A DNA stretch of 63,533 nt, the filler included, from Cercozoa sp. M6MM (taxonomy: Eukaryota > Protista > Endomyxa: Ascetosporea): assembly GCA_040357565.1 (NCBI GenBank). It is 18 parts of 18 records of this genome, joined end to end, with 100 filler letters (N's around TTAATTAATTAA, not from the genome) between each part and the next. Parts side by side here need not be neighbours in the genome. Positions count along the whole stretch, not along the records: positions 28,730 to 35,416 come from JBDODJ010000705.1; 17 more parts are not named here. One strand, 5' to 3'. The notes below the pieces were generated by a model. That model saw only the letters and a list, made by a program, of their open reading frames with translations, did no database searches and was not told where the DNA came from. The position numbers were made by a program, and so were the translations under genes. How positions within the stretch are numbered: the first letter of the stretch is position 1; every line of letters starts with the position of its first letter. Below, piece after piece: positions 28,630 through 35,416 of the stretch.

Positions 28630-28791
28630 NNNNNNNNNNNNNNNNNNNNNNNNNNNNNNNNNNNNNNNNNNNNTTAATTAATTAANNNNNNNNNNNNNNN
28701 NNNNNNNNNNNNNNNNNNNNNNNNNNNNNATATATATATATATATATCATCTGTGTCTTATTTGGGGTTGTAGGTGTTTGAGTTTCTCCGT

Positions 28792-30339
28792 GATCACTAT
28801 GTTGGTGATGGCCGTTTCCGGTTCGAGGTAGACGATGTTCGATGAAGTACACTCCGTTCGAATATGGCAATGTGATCCGTAGTACTCCGCGAACTTTCTT
28901 CGTTGGGCGTTGACTCCGCCCGGTTCTGAGGTACGTGTCCGTGCATGTATATGTCTGTGTGCACGGGTGTGCATGTGTACCATGTGCAACAGGACAAACG
29001 CGACCTGCTGATTCAGCTGCGTAGTCGAGATACCAACCAACTCGTCGGCCTAATCACTGGTGTACCTGGCACCATTGTCGTTGGCGATCCCGTCGCGTAA
29101 GTTTGCTTTCGTTTGTAGGCATACACCACTGTACGCTGGTTTGTTTACGCACTCACGTTGACTCTTGTGCTTTCAGCGAGGACGCGGGGAGCACGCGACG
29201 CACCATGGTCACAATCGACTTCTTGTGCGTGCACGCTGAATATCGGTGCTGTGTTCCTATGTCTCTGTTGCCGCTATGTCACACCCCTATTGGACAGAAA
29301 TCGAAGTCTCGCACCGCTGCTGATCCAGGAAGTGACGCGGCGCACACGTCGTTATGACATCCACCAGGCCGTCTACACTGCCGGTACGTCCGCCATTGCA
29401 CAACCTCCCATCCGATCTGTCTCTGCCTTTAATGCATGAACAGGCGTGCTGCTGCCGACACCAGTGTCGGAGGCGCAGTACTACCACCGCATCCTCAATG
29501 TCAAGAAGGCGATTCGCACGGGCTTCTCGTTTTTGCCTTTCGGTCGATCACTGCGTGTACCATCTGTCATGCACTTTAAGGGGTATCCGGACAGTGCAGT
29601 GCAAGTCATCGTTGTGATGTTGTAGGATGAGATCCGCGACAAGAAGCCAGCACCGTTGCCGCAACTGCCTCGCTTCCAGCCGCTGCAACGGCGGCACGTG
29701 GCCTCTGCGTAACTTGTCCTACTTCCCATCTTGGTTCTTTCACCTCCTTCTGCACACCAGGTGCCAACTACTAAACGAGGACCTGTCGCGCACGACGCGT
29801 CTCTGGCAGCACTTCGACGAGGCTGAGTTTGCGCACATGTTCCTTCCCAGACAGGGTACGCTCCCGCTCCCCCGATGCTTTCTTGCCAGCTGGAAGGGTG
29901 TTTGCATCAGGTGTTGTACACTCCTATGTCATCACGGACGAGAGCGATGACAGCGTGGTTACCGACTTTGCTTCGTACTACGTGGTGCCCAACCAGGTTC
30001 TCGACGAGGACGAGGTACCTAACTTAGCATAGATAGACACACACACACACGCACACGCACACGTATTTGACTATACAGCAAGTGGATGCGGTATTGAACA
30101 CGGCGTTCCTGTACTACACGGCGGCATCGACTGTGCCGCTGTCGGCTCTCGTGGACGATCTGCTCAGCGAGGCGTACGACGCAGGCATCGACGTGTGCAA
30201 CTGCCTCACCGTCGGCAAGAACCGCGACATAATGCGCCAGTGCAAGTTTGGCCCTGGCACCGGCTTCCTCAAGTACTACATCTACAACTGGAAGACGCGA
30301 TCTCTGCACGACGATCAGGTCGGCCTGCTGCTGCTCTAG
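28792..30339 (+). CDS. NMT: N-myristoyltransferase (divergent), 5' truncated, multi-exon
   Basis: FRFEYSANFLRWALTPPG, IDFLCVHAEYR..LAPLLIQEVTRR, QAVYTAG..LPTP..YYHR.LN, KFGPGTGFLKYYIYNW..VGLLLL*. Confidence 0.9.
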
Positions 30340-30505
30340 CCATGCCGATGAATCTTTACTGCACTTCTTTGAGCTGTATTTAGTACTCATTTAGTTAGAG
30401 AAGTGGCTGGTCAGTTTCCCTGCGGTCCGGGGTGCTTCAGAACGGTGCTTCAGAACATGACAACGAACAGAGGTTAACTATATGGCTGTAAATTATGGTT
30501 GTGGT

Positions 30506-30521
30506 GGTGTATTTATACACC
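30506..30521 (-). promoter_or_regulatory. Variant histone mRNA 3' stem-loop (H2A)
   Basis: Minus strand GGTGTA-TAAA-TACACC followed by ACCAC, 66 nt after the H2A stop; identical in H2B. Confidence 0.85.
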
Positions 30522-30587
30522 GGAAGGGAGGTGGATGGATCCCTTGATTGGTTTGCTGGGAGCGTATTTTGCGAGCTGGCAAGATAC

Positions 30588-31028
30588 TTAGGCGCGCTTG
30601 CTCTTCTTGCTCTTCTTCTCCTTAGGCAGGAGCGAGGCGTGGATGTTGGGCAGCACACCGCCCTGCGCGATCGTCACCTGGCCGAGCAGCTGGTTGAACT
30701 CCTCGTCGTTGCGCACGGCGAGCTGAATGTGACGCGGGATGATGCGCTGGCGCTTGTTGTCGCGAGCGGCGTTGCCGGCAAGCTCCAGAAGCTCAGCGCA
30801 CAGGTACTCGAGAACCGCGGCGCAGTACACCGGGGCGCCAGAGCCGATGCGGGCAGCGTAGCGACCCTCGCGGAGGAAACGGTGCAGACGGCCCACCGGG
30901 AACGTCAGACCAGCGCGCGACGAACGCGTCTGCTGCTTGGCGCCCTTGGCGCTACCCTGCAGAATACCATGCCTTCAAAGCCCAGGCACAAAAAGTAAAC
31001 GCCTTGGTACCTTGCCTTTGCCAGCCAT
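30588..31028 (-). CDS. H2A: Histone H2A (intron 30957-31010)
   Basis: MAGKGK|[78 protein letters not shown]. Confidence 0.97.
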
Positions 31029-31134
31029 GATTGCTTGTCTTGGTTACTTTGTCAAACCTTTCGAACTTTGCGAAATGCAGAAGTGGTTGAGGTGGAACCT
31101 CGCACTCGCAATCTGGGTGGCTCAAATCGGCCGG

Positions 31135-31481
31135 AAAGTTGCCGAGTGTGCCACCATTTTGCCAAAAAACTCTCACAAACTCTCTTACGGGCTCTATTAC
31201 ATGCATATAGACATAAAGGGCATGATAAATTAACATCGACACCTTTTTAAACCTTAAAAACGCTTGCAGCGAGAAAAACCCCAAAAATATCTCGCGCCCA
31301 AATCTGCCAAAAAAGTTGCCAGGGAATAAATACTTGATTTTTCTTTTTGTAGTGCGTAAACCGCCAATTGTGCCACTTTGAACTGATGTAAAGTAGCATT
31401 AGAAGTTATTTAGCGAGCGTCACGCTCCAAAACGCACAAATGAGAGTTTTCTGGCAAAATGGTGGCACACTCGGCAACTTT
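31135..31481. promoter_or_regulatory. Bidirectional H2A/H2B promoter with a 41-bp inverted repeat (31135-31175 / 31441-31481)
   Basis: AAAGTTGCCGAGTGTGCCACCATTTTGCCA(A/G)AAAACTCTCA, 40/41 identical, each copy about 90-105 nt upstream of an ATG. Confidence 0.8.
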
Positions 31482-31572
31482 TGGGCCCTGAGGAGTGGGC
31501 CTTTGTTGGGCCGAAAAGTCGGGTGACCCCACCCCAAGAGTTTGTTCTTCCAAGACACAAGACAAGTTAAAG

Positions 31573-31932
31573 ATGCCCGCCAAGAAGACCCCAGCCAAGA
31601 AGGTCCCCGCTGCCGCCGCTGCCGAGCACGCTGGCGCTCGCCGCAAGCCGACGCAGTCGTACAACATCTACATCTACAAGGTGCTCAAGCAGGTGCATCC
31701 GGACGTTGGCATCTCCAAGCGCGCCATGTCGATCATGAACTCGTTCATCAACGACACGTTCGAGCGTCTCGCTCTTGAGGCCTCGCGCCTGGCGCAGTAC
31801 AACAAGAAGTCGACGCTCACGTCGCGAGAGATCCAGACGGCCGCGCGCCTGCTGCTCCCGGGTGAGCTTGCCAAGCACGCCATCTCCGAGGGCACCAAGG
31901 CCGTGACCAAGTACACGTCGAGCCGCTCGTAA
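31573..31932 (+). CDS. H2B: Histone H2B
   Basis: [79 protein letters not shown]. Confidence 0.98.
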
Positions 31933-32004
31933 GCGCCATCAAAAAGCGATTGCTCGAATAAAAAGCAAGCAGCAACTTCAAAACAGAATCCAAGCGTTTC
32001 TTCC

Positions 32005-32020
32005 GGTGTATAAATACACC
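32005..32020 (+). promoter_or_regulatory. Variant histone mRNA 3' stem-loop (H2B)
   Basis: GGTGTA-TAAA-TACACC followed by ACCCA, 72 nt after the H2B stop. Confidence 0.85.
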
Positions 32021-32245
32021 ACCCAACTCCTTTTCCAAAATATCGTTTCCAAAATTCGCTGGACGCAGCTGGTATTGTGTCGTCCGCTAAACTCGCTGTT
32101 GCTTTGCGACCAACGACGTATGAAGCTCGACGAAGCTCGACTCTTGTATGCCGACGGGATCGAAATAAACTGAACTTACCACTACGTTGCGTTTGTTGCA
32201 CAGATAAATATGATAAAGTGGTGACAGGGTATCAGATTTTTCGCC

Positions 32246-35200
32246 TTAGTGGCGGCGCGTGCGCGTGCGGGGATTGGCAATGTAGCGACGCGTATGAGCA
32301 CGCCACTCCTGCAGCAGAGGTTCACGAACGTGCACTGCACGGCCGTGAGGGCTCTCCACTCTGCAATGCAAGGGAACGTACATATGTTTACTATGTACAC
32401 CCGAGAGAGAGAGAGCAGAAAGACAAAGCGTACTGTAGTTCAATCGGTCCAGCAGCAACGACGCCGACAAAGCCGAGGCCAGGAAGCGCAATTTCACAGG
32501 CAACGTCGGTCCATCCCTTGCCTGTAAGGGAGGGGATATACCGATCGGGGGTGCGCCAGGACATAAAAGGCTAAAAGGCAGGTCAGTGCACAGCAGGACA
32601 GGTACCCTCGATCTGCATGATGCCGTCCGAGGAGACCGGGTGCTCCAGCAGGCCAGAAACATGCTGCACAGGCGACACGTTAAATTCCTCGAGTCGCTCG
32701 GGACTGTAGGGCGGGAAGATGTGTCCATGACGACCCACACCTACAGAGGGAGGGAGGGAGTAAAGGTCGGAGGGCTGGGGGAAGGAAACGGTAGTCTACC
32801 ATGCTTGAGTGTGTACTCGAGTCGGTCCTGCAGCGACAAGTGCACGCCGACGTTGCGTGAGACCCACGAAGTCAGGAAGCACGGATCGCCAGACACCTGG
32901 CGGATACGGTAAAAGCCGCCGAGGCACAGCACCTGCAGACATCAGTCAGTCAGTCACGATGGAGGGATAGGTAGAAGGTAGAGATTAGTCGGTACCTCAC
33001 GACCAGGCTCGACCTTGTAACTCACTGGCAGCACGCGGTCCTTGGGCATCACGTCGCGCAACTCGTCGCTTCGCAGGTGCGACAAAAGGTTACGCTCCTG
33101 CACCAGACCCGGCGTGTCCACCAGCGAGCGTTGCGGCCACACCGGGTGCGGGAACGGAATCACGCCTACGGGGGGGGGGGGGGAAAACAGGGGGCGAACG
33201 GCGGGGGAGGGGTGTACCCTGCGTGGTGCCAGGCAGCCGCGAAGCCGTCGGCAGGCGCTGTCGCACGTTCTCAAGGAGTCCCTTCTCGATAAGTGCTGAG
33301 ATGAGACTGCTCTTGCCCGTATTGGCGGCACCGCACACCACAGCATCTCGATGGCTACACTTACAGACACATACAGAACATAAACATACAGTACACACAC
33401 AGGAGAGTAAGGGTGCGGAAGGGGATACCGCAGGTCATGCTCCTTCATGAGACGCGTCAGGAGCCGGCCCACAGCGTTCTGCTTCTTGGCCGACATGGGC
33501 ACCACGGCGGCCACATCGAGGCCTACACGATTAGGAAGGGGAATCGGATGGAATAGAATGGTATGGCATGCGGCAGAGGAGGACGAGGGTACCACTGAGT
33601 TCGCACTGCTCGCGCGCCCACTGCTGCACGCGCGGCCACGACACGCGTCGCGGCAGCAGGTCCATCTTGTTCAGCGCCAGGATCACACGATGCGCGCGAC
33701 CCTGCTGCTTCTCTTCCTGCACATACGCAAGTTAAGGGCACGGGGTTAAAAGGGCACAGAGTGCAAAGCTACAAAGCTACCTCAAGCAGTTGCGGTAGCT
33801 CCTCCAGCTGCGTGCCCTCGAAGTCAAAGGCGTCGACCACCACGATGAGCACCTTGGCAGACGCTTCGTTCGACTCGTTAGGTCGTTGCGAACTGTGCAA
33901 TTCATAGGCATATACGCAGATAGAATATATATATGTCTGTATTACCGAAGTGCATCACGCAGAACGTTGCGGAACTGCTGAATATCGGCCTCTGCACGAA
34001 CAGGGAATAAATTGAGGTGGGAGGTTAACGGAAGACAACGCAGCACCAGTAGGCGACACGGCAATGCCCGCCTTCTCGGCCACGTTCTGCACCAACATAT
34101 CAAGTGGATAAAGTGTACTTATGAGCGAAAGGGTAGACTACCTGCCCATCACGGAAGAGCGTCATGCAGCGGTGGCACGTCACTTGCGCACGTGCCTTCA
34201 GCTTCCGTTCCTGCTGCTGTTCGGCAGCGCGGCTCCACTGCGCACGAGCTGCCTCGGCCACCTATGCAATGGGGGGGGGGGTAAACGTACATACACATAC
34301 ACAGAGTAAGCGTACCGCAGGGTGCTGCAGGTCGATGTCCTGCCAGTGCCAGTCCTTCTTGTTGTCAGCGCCGTGCACCTCCTGGTGAGCCTCCACCACG
34401 GCTGCCCAAGGAGTGAAGGGAGTAAGAGGGGGCGGGGTTTAAGACAGAAGTCATACCAGCACTGGGTCGCTCGGTGAGCTTTCGTGTCTCGTAAACGTCC
34501 CGATTGTCGATGGGACCACGTACACGTTCAAGTGCCTACATACCTCTCCATCCTAGTGAACACTCATCGGTACAGCTGGGCATACCTGTCGCAGACGACG
34601 CTCCCACCCGGCCGAGGTTTCGTCAAAGTCATCGACGCCGTCGGCATCCACTTCGAGCTCGTCCTCGAACTGTAGCATATAGGACAGGCTTACCCCCCCC
34701 CCCCAGTGAAGTTGTGCGGGACTACCTCTTCGGTAGATGGCGTGAAACGCGAGTCGCGACCGACCTGTTCGAGTTTGTTCCACTGTGAGTCGGGAATGAC
34801 GACCTCGTCCTCTTCGTCGTCATCGTCATCATCTTCGACTGCAAGATGGACAGGGTAGCGGACAAGGTAATGGACAGGGAAGTGGACAAGGCAGTGGACA
34901 AGGTAGTGGACAAGGTAGTGTATCCTCAAGGTAATGGGACAGTTGTACCTACACCAGCGAGTTGCTCGACTGAGAGGCCAGTTACTTGCGACATCAGCAG
35001 CGGCACCACCTGAGATAGACAAATGGTAGACATATGGTAGGAGAAGGTAGGTAGACGGCAGGAAGGTAGAGGTGACAGAGAGCAAGGAGGCACCTCGGCA
35101 CGACACAGCGCCATCTGACGCTCGAACTTCTTGTGGTCCGACACGTAACCCTGCCAAGGACATGTAAATAGGAGGTAAAGAGGGTTAAAACGGTATAAGG

Positions 35201-35416
35201 CGTACATGCTTGGCGGTCGAGTCGCCTCGGACACGCGGCAACACTGCCTTGGCGTCGATCCAGCCTCGCTATACACACATGTGCATTAACATACGGAGAC
35301 ATACGGACACACACAACTTCAGTTGTGTACCTGATCGGGACGCTTCCACTGCAGCGCAGCACCGCAGCCAGCACAGTGCGTCGGGAGCAACTTGACCACT
35401 TCCTCCTGTACATATA
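32246..35416 (-). CDS. NOA1/YqeH circularly permuted GTPase, 5' truncated
   Basis: Zn-finger CAGCG...CHRC; VVDAFDF; G4 NKMDLL; G1 GAANTGKSS; G2 PGTT; G3 DTPG in the permuted order; ends VREPLL..RRH*. Confidence 0.88.

Follow-up and report, generated by a model that had tools for sequence, protein, structure and literature searches.

In animals, the 3' end of histone mRNAs carries a stem-loop (Rfam RF00032, Histone3) to which SLBP and 3'hExo bind, and the transcript is cleaved by a complex that unites U7 small nuclear ribonucleoprotein (snRNP) and CPSF73. We describe here a hairpin that follows both the histone H2A gene and the histone H2B gene at one locus of Cercozoa sp. M6MM, and that we read, with a probability of roughly 0.65, as a local diverged form of this SLBP-type element. 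Positions count along the window, a stretch of 63,533 nucleotides; the region analysed is the 6.7-kb piece at 28730-35416 (JBDODJ010000705.1), with a G+C content of 55%. This reading is plausible but unproven, and the element, so read, is no new kind of mechanism or system.

The conserved unit of animal histone mRNAs is 26 nt long, a 16-nt hairpin with five nucleotides on either side, and the stem-loop lies 25-60 nt from the stop codon (bioRxiv 10.64898/2026.10.14.759114). According to PMC10388802, which cites Tan et al. 2013, the sole base-specific contacts between SLBP and its RNA are two hydrogen bonds, from Arg181 to the G at stem position 2. The G-C pair at this position is needed (PMC10388802; bioRxiv 10.64898/2026.10.14.759114), and the minimal high-affinity ligand of human SLBP has two 5' adenines and one 3' flanking A (PMC10388802). 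In the loop, the U at position 3 (U3) is described as retained in animals and protists as well as in fungi and plants (bioRxiv 10.64898/2026.10.14.759114).

Divergent stem-loops outside animals have been claimed before. For protists, other authors cite Davila Lopez and Samuelsson 2008 on this point, and a preprint makes the claim for Rhizaria as well, which are said to have kept SLBP together with stem-loops close to the stops of every core histone (bioRxiv 10.64898/2026.10.14.759114). The survey in that preprint accepts any hairpin with a 6-bp stem and a 4-nt loop (a 6/4 hairpin) that has no more than one mismatch and lies within 300 nt, and counts stem-loops in 214 of 310 protist species; it also proposes mixed stem-loop/poly(A) states for early fungi. 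In Physarum, histone mRNAs combine a stem-loop with a poly(A) signal (PMC8600027).

In the M6MM piece, H2A and H2B form a head-to-head pair and are transcribed divergently. The H2B gene (31573-31932, plus strand) is intronless, with 119 codons and a stop; it is supported by its translation, by a Pfam Histone match (E=6e-20) and by H2B homologues. The H2A gene lies on the minus strand: exon 1 (31011-31028) encodes MAGKGK, the N-terminus common to annotated Cercozoa sp. M6MM H2A proteins, a 54-nt intron follows codon 6 (30957-31010, GTACC...TGCAG, found by reading the sequence), and exon 2 (30588-30956), stop codon included, matches Pfam Histone_H2A_C and Histone. The downstream regions of the two genes share one block of 24 nt, CTTCCGGTGTATAAATACACCACC, made of a 5-nt 5' flank (CTTCC), a 16-nt hairpin (GGTGTA, TAAA, TACACC) and a 3-nt 3' flank (ACC). 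It occupies 32000-32023 on the plus strand after H2B, and 30503-30526 on the minus strand after H2A, so that each copy is in the sense orientation of its own histone gene; for the repeat finder, the two arms are 100% complementary, one being the exact reverse complement of the other. Between stop codon and first base of the stem there are 72 nt in H2B and 66 nt in H2A.

These observations bear out the initial annotation, which had claimed 24 identical nucleotides at these two distances from the stops, in 3' untranslated regions (UTRs) otherwise dissimilar: the identity was recovered by sequence reading, repeat finder and pattern search, the distances follow from the gene models, and, once the two 3' regions are aligned, their identity is limited to the block and to the word CAAC, which directly follows the H2B block and is offset by 1 nt after the H2A block. 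The 3' flank reads ACCCA after H2B and ACCAC after H2A. Elsewhere in the two regions, only a few collinear 5- to 6-mers are in common, which is the chance level. The words GCTCG, CAGCAA and ATCCA, common to the sequences upstream of the hairpins, were discarded on the same ground, since such sharing is expected between regions of 70 nt.

According to the pattern search, the 6.7-kb piece holds exactly two copies of the 16-nt core, one on the sense strand of each gene. No third copy is found in the piece when up to two mismatches are tolerated, and none of 100 shuffles gave a match. The expected number of 24-mers common to two 300-nt regions is about 2.7e-10. Identical 24-mers after two non-homologous genes, with a chance of about 3e-10, thus argue that selection acts on every base of the block, loop and flanks included; and the fact that every base is identical on two gene classes suggests a single factor that reads the sequence. 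Outside the piece, the search for an exact 19-mer in metagenome contigs returned five matches, about the number expected by chance, in unrelated contexts and with no histone gene near. Lemnamoeba sinaloensis, the present name of M6MM, appears to be missing from the metagenome collection that was scanned. A search for H2A over prokaryote genome contigs, in quest of stray eukaryotic contigs, gave no match, and the 16-mer, written as DNA, as RNA or as reverse complement, had no match in the literature searched.

The core folds into a perfect Watson-Crick stem of 6 bp, GGUGUA paired with UACACC, closed by the 4-nt loop UAAA, with an energy of -7.1 kcal/mol. The hairpin lies at 32005-32020 (plus strand) after H2B and, with identical sequence, at 30506-30521 (minus strand) after H2A; in contexts of both 46 nt and 138 nt, it is the minimum free energy (MFE) structure as well as the centroid structure. 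Perfect 6-bp/4-nt hairpins are common objects: a stretch of 6.7 kb should hold about 3.5 of them over its two strands, and three unrelated ones are present in the piece. The significance of the element therefore comes from the identity of the blocks, their position and their orientation; the fold energy carries none. Read from the other strand (30506-30521, plus; 32005-32020, minus), the same positions form a hairpin with loop UUUA, whose first and third bases are U. This antisense hairpin is probably incidental; it would also fold in read-through transcripts of the convergent neighbours.

The likeness to the animal element is extensive. In both cases the structure stands on the sense strand after histone stop codons, is the same on different histone classes, and has a 6-bp stem and a 4-nt loop. 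The GG/CC base of the stem is kept, with it the G-C pair at stem position 2; the first position of the loop is a U; and the 3' flank has the form ACC(C)A, which includes one 3' flanking A. The conserved footprint has a comparable extent, about 24-26 nt, divided as 5+16+3 here and as 5+16+5 in animals.

Each of these features enters the case for a diverged SLBP-type stem-loop. Both copies are in sense orientation, 66 and 72 nt after a stop; the exact 6-bp/4-nt hairpin is the MFE and centroid structure; the 5+16+3 footprint, completed by the offset CAAC, agrees with the animal 5+16+5 unit; and the position-2 G-C pair, the 3' flanking A, the U at loop position 1 and the ACC(C)A flank are all retained. 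The host is moreover a rhizarian, and SLBP and stem-loops are reported for Rhizaria (bioRxiv 10.64898/2026.10.14.759114). The genes, finally, look like canonical replication-type histones: they form a divergent pair and contain 0 and 1 introns, against 10-13 per gene for the genome, and this also speaks for the reading.

The element shares with the divergent stem-loops of protists, early fungi and algae a 6/4 hairpin located after core histones with a sequence that departs from the animal consensus, a conserved G-C pair at position 2, histone genes that bear introns, and a possible coexistence with poly(A) signals. It differs from the stem-loops of the preprint in one respect, for those keep U3 and the M6MM element is without it. 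The nature of the evidence differs too: there it is a scan for hairpins, here it is the identity between two genes.

Several observations weigh against our reading, and most of them are departures from the animal element. The loop is UAAA, with an A in place of the U at position 3. The 5' flank, CUUCC, is rich in pyrimidines instead of A, and has CC where the animal element has AA. The closing pair is A-U and not U-A, the 5' strand of the stem carries a purine at position 4, and the hairpins, at 66-72 nt from the stop, lie slightly farther out than the 25-60 nt of animals. The Rfam Histone3 model finds no match at E≤10, neither in the whole piece nor in 76-nt slices around both copies. No purine-rich run is apparent downstream of the hairpins, and the alignment reveals no block common to the two downstream regions that could stand for a purine-rich downstream element: they have only words resembling CCA(A/U)AAU in common. 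Two further points evoke polyadenylation: an AAUAAA lies 25 nt after the H2B stop, upstream of the hairpin, and is absent in H2A, and the loop with its closing bases spells UAUAAA in both copies. The element is also seen after two genes at one locus only. Lastly, the survey cited in favour of rhizarian stem-loops helps little. In simulation, its rule finds at least one match in 74% of random 300-nt stretches, so its 214 of 310 protist species may be close to background; because of this random rate, the preprint's stem-loop calls in protists deserve little weight and lend weak support here. A further difference from the animal element is the intron in the H2A gene. Within the piece, there is no Rfam match to U7 small nuclear RNA (snRNA). 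The matches that Rfam does return at E≤10 were taken as noise, among them mir-297 on a GT/CA repeat and, over the antisense strand of the hairpin, UPD-PK2 with 12.9 bits.

The initial annotation had listed, on the one hand, the features kept (geometry, GG/CC base, ACC(C)A flank) and, on the other, those that are not standard (A-U top pair, UAAA loop, CTTCC flank), and had suggested that standard models may miss the element. Sequence and folding agree with both lists, and the silence of Histone3 with the suggestion. Its conclusion of a "rewritten recognition code" is an overstatement: the G at stem position 2, the sole base-specific contact according to PMC10388802, is kept, and divergent protist stem-loops had already been claimed. 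Since defining features of RF00032 fail, we do not assign the element to that family; it is most likely a variant that works like one of its members.

Alternatively, the hairpin might serve the general cleavage and polyadenylation machinery, as a structured poly(A) signal or as a hybrid of stem-loop and poly(A) signal. The loop would present UAAA, within UAUAAA or UGUAUAAA, and histone mRNAs would be cut and tailed about 10-30 nt further down, whether or not SLBP takes part. The hexamer UAUAAA, which resembles a poly(A) signal, is indeed in both copies; in red algae, the tetramers UAAA and GUAA are reported to be poly(A) signals, as is UAA for diatoms (PMC11529991); the double signals of Physarum (PMC8600027) and the mixed states proposed for early fungi (bioRxiv 10.64898/2026.10.14.759114) offer precedents; and both the apparent lack of a purine-rich element and the AAUAAA after the H2B stop would fit. 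The loop UAAA and the UGUAUAAA contained in the hairpin recall the algal and stramenopile signals UAAA, GUAA and UAA, to which green algae add UGUAA (PMC11529991), but those are words of 3-5 nt, with no conserved hairpin and no specificity for histones. A signal of 4-6 nt leaves unexplained both the identity over 24 nt and the perfect 6-bp palindrome. Half of the hexamer, besides, is base-paired, and the separate AAUAAA is upstream of the H2B hairpin and has no counterpart in H2A. We consider this explanation unlikely. The hairpin could also be specific to histones and the target of some factor that is not SLBP, for the control of stability, translation or localisation, the 3' end being made elsewhere by an ordinary pathway. 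The lack of U3 and of the A-rich 5' flank, together with the failure of the Rfam model, would fit such a factor. An unrelated hairpin, on the other hand, would hardly combine the 6/4 geometry, the GG base, the U at loop position 1, the ACC(C)A flank and the position after the stop, and SLBP is reported for Rhizaria (bioRxiv 10.64898/2026.10.14.759114). This makes a factor other than SLBP quite improbable.

The remaining explanations dispense with the RNA hairpin. The core is a near-perfect palindrome at the DNA level, and contains the TATA-like TATAAATA; both copies sit in short gaps between convergent genes, one between the last exon of a neighbour and H2A, the other between H2B and a probable GTPase gene; and symmetric DNA elements do occur at this locus, in the form of an inverted repeat in the promoter region. 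One may thus think of a site for a transcription-factor dimer, of a TATA-like box, or of a terminator or insulator that separates each histone gene from its convergent neighbour. A symmetric site, however, has no need for an asymmetric loop, TAAA and not TTTA, nor for flanks CTTCC and ACC that are identical in the sense of the transcript. Neither copy has a gene start downstream, which would leave a promoter without a target, and the 6+4+6 geometry is exactly that of the RNA element; a role at the DNA level is for these reasons very unlikely. That the block would be the functionless remnant of a short tract of gene conversion or duplication between the two 3' regions agrees with there being two copies only, but it asks that a perfect hairpin with histone features be placed at a like distance after two genes, in dissimilar surroundings, by accident, and we give this idea almost no credit.

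Returning to the SLBP-type stem-loop, a sequence of events can be proposed. Both genes would be transcribed through the hairpin, and both pre-mRNAs would fold it. An SLBP orthologue would recognise the 6-bp/4-nt shape together with the position-2 G of the stem, and endonucleolytic cleavage would fall within ACC(C)A or beyond it, a few nucleotides 3' of the stem, leaving mRNAs that presumably have no poly(A) tail. With a common structure at their 3' ends, H2A and H2B mRNAs might be processed, translated and degraded jointly, in step with DNA replication and coupled to the cell cycle. As to how the departures arose, SLBP and its hairpin may have co-evolved away from U3 and the A-rich 5' flank, or the UAAA loop may double as a poly(A) signal in a true hybrid; this proposal is tentative, and rather doubtful. 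Such a hybrid would be a living intermediate between histone mRNAs ended by a stem-loop and those that are polyadenylated, in an amoeba that can be cultured and whose genome is assembled to chromosome level.

If the SLBP-type reading is true, we have here a clean histone 3' hairpin under strict selection, without the loop U3 and the A-rich flank that define SLBP ligands. It would separate the real needs of SLBP, shape and the position-2 G, from a habit of the animal lineage, and it would provide a better criterion for surveys outside animals: a motif common to histone classes, instead of any 6/4 hairpin. This apparent exception to two features taken to be near-universal comes, besides, from a cultured organism whose small genome is complete and for which a transcriptome exists.

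M6MM, a marine amoeba isolated from fish gills, belongs to Apofilosa (Rhizaria) and has since been renamed Lemnamoeba sinaloensis. The genome papers report 53% G+C, 10-13 introns in each gene, genes separated by very short distances, and simple repeats at both ends of draft contigs. The piece agrees with this portrait in its G+C content, its density of introns and the repeat at its edge. In these papers and their supplements, histone 3' ends and SLBP are unmentioned. The predicted splice product of the H2A gene, MAGKGK/GS..., agrees with the N-termini of three annotated M6MM H2A proteins (P0125, P0130, P0132). Homology searches for H2A used exon 2 alone as query and left out the joined protein: the closest named match is a Cercozoa sp. 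M6MM protein with 95% identity and an identical C-terminal tail, and two further M6MM H2A proteins have 87% identity in the search table, or 80-81% over the full alignment. H2B proved too conserved to point to one organism, and a search with the N-myristoyltransferase exon gave the family only.

The region between the two histone genes holds an inverted repeat, with arms of 47 nt that are 94% complementary according to the repeat finder. The left arm (31129-31175) is on the H2A side and the right arm (31441-31487) on the H2B side, each about 90-145 nt upstream of the ATG of its own gene, with the words GTTGCC and TTTGCCA. Because of this repeat, paired control elements oriented with their genes can be seen as a trait of the locus. 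Near 31300-31320 the repeat recurs in part, and 31363-31376 holds a CCAAT-like GCCAATTGTGCCAC; all of these are probably promoter modules specific to histone genes. The hairpin also resembles the promoter word CCAGGGAATAAATAC (80% over 15 nt), a likeness that we put down to chance.

On the far side of each hairpin is a convergent gene. The last exon of an N-myristoyltransferase (NMT) gene (30079-30336, plus strand; NMT_C, E=1.6e-20; stop at 30339) faces H2A, and a multi-exon probable GTPase gene (about 32250-35400, minus strand), known by a weak MMR_HSR1 match (E=3e-4) just below the Pfam cut-off, faces H2B. The hairpins are only about 165-225 nt from the stop codons of these neighbours. Intergenic gaps measure 150-250 nt, and the introns of the neighbour genes are numerous, of 50-90 nt.

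The 13-mer GGTGCTTCAGAAC is perfectly duplicated in tandem at 30431-30456, between the NMT stop and the H2A hairpin. Many introns, such as 30957-31010, 30018-30078 and 33146-33200, start with GTAC(C/G/A) and have interiors that are C-rich or made of CA/GT repeats. CA/GT microsatellites and homopolymer runs of G or C are found within introns at 30035-30065, 33160-33175, 34270-34282 and 34693-34705, and an (AT)n run occupies the left edge of the piece, at 28730-28747. These simple repeats agree with the unusual repeat load reported for the M6MM/Lemnamoeba genome.

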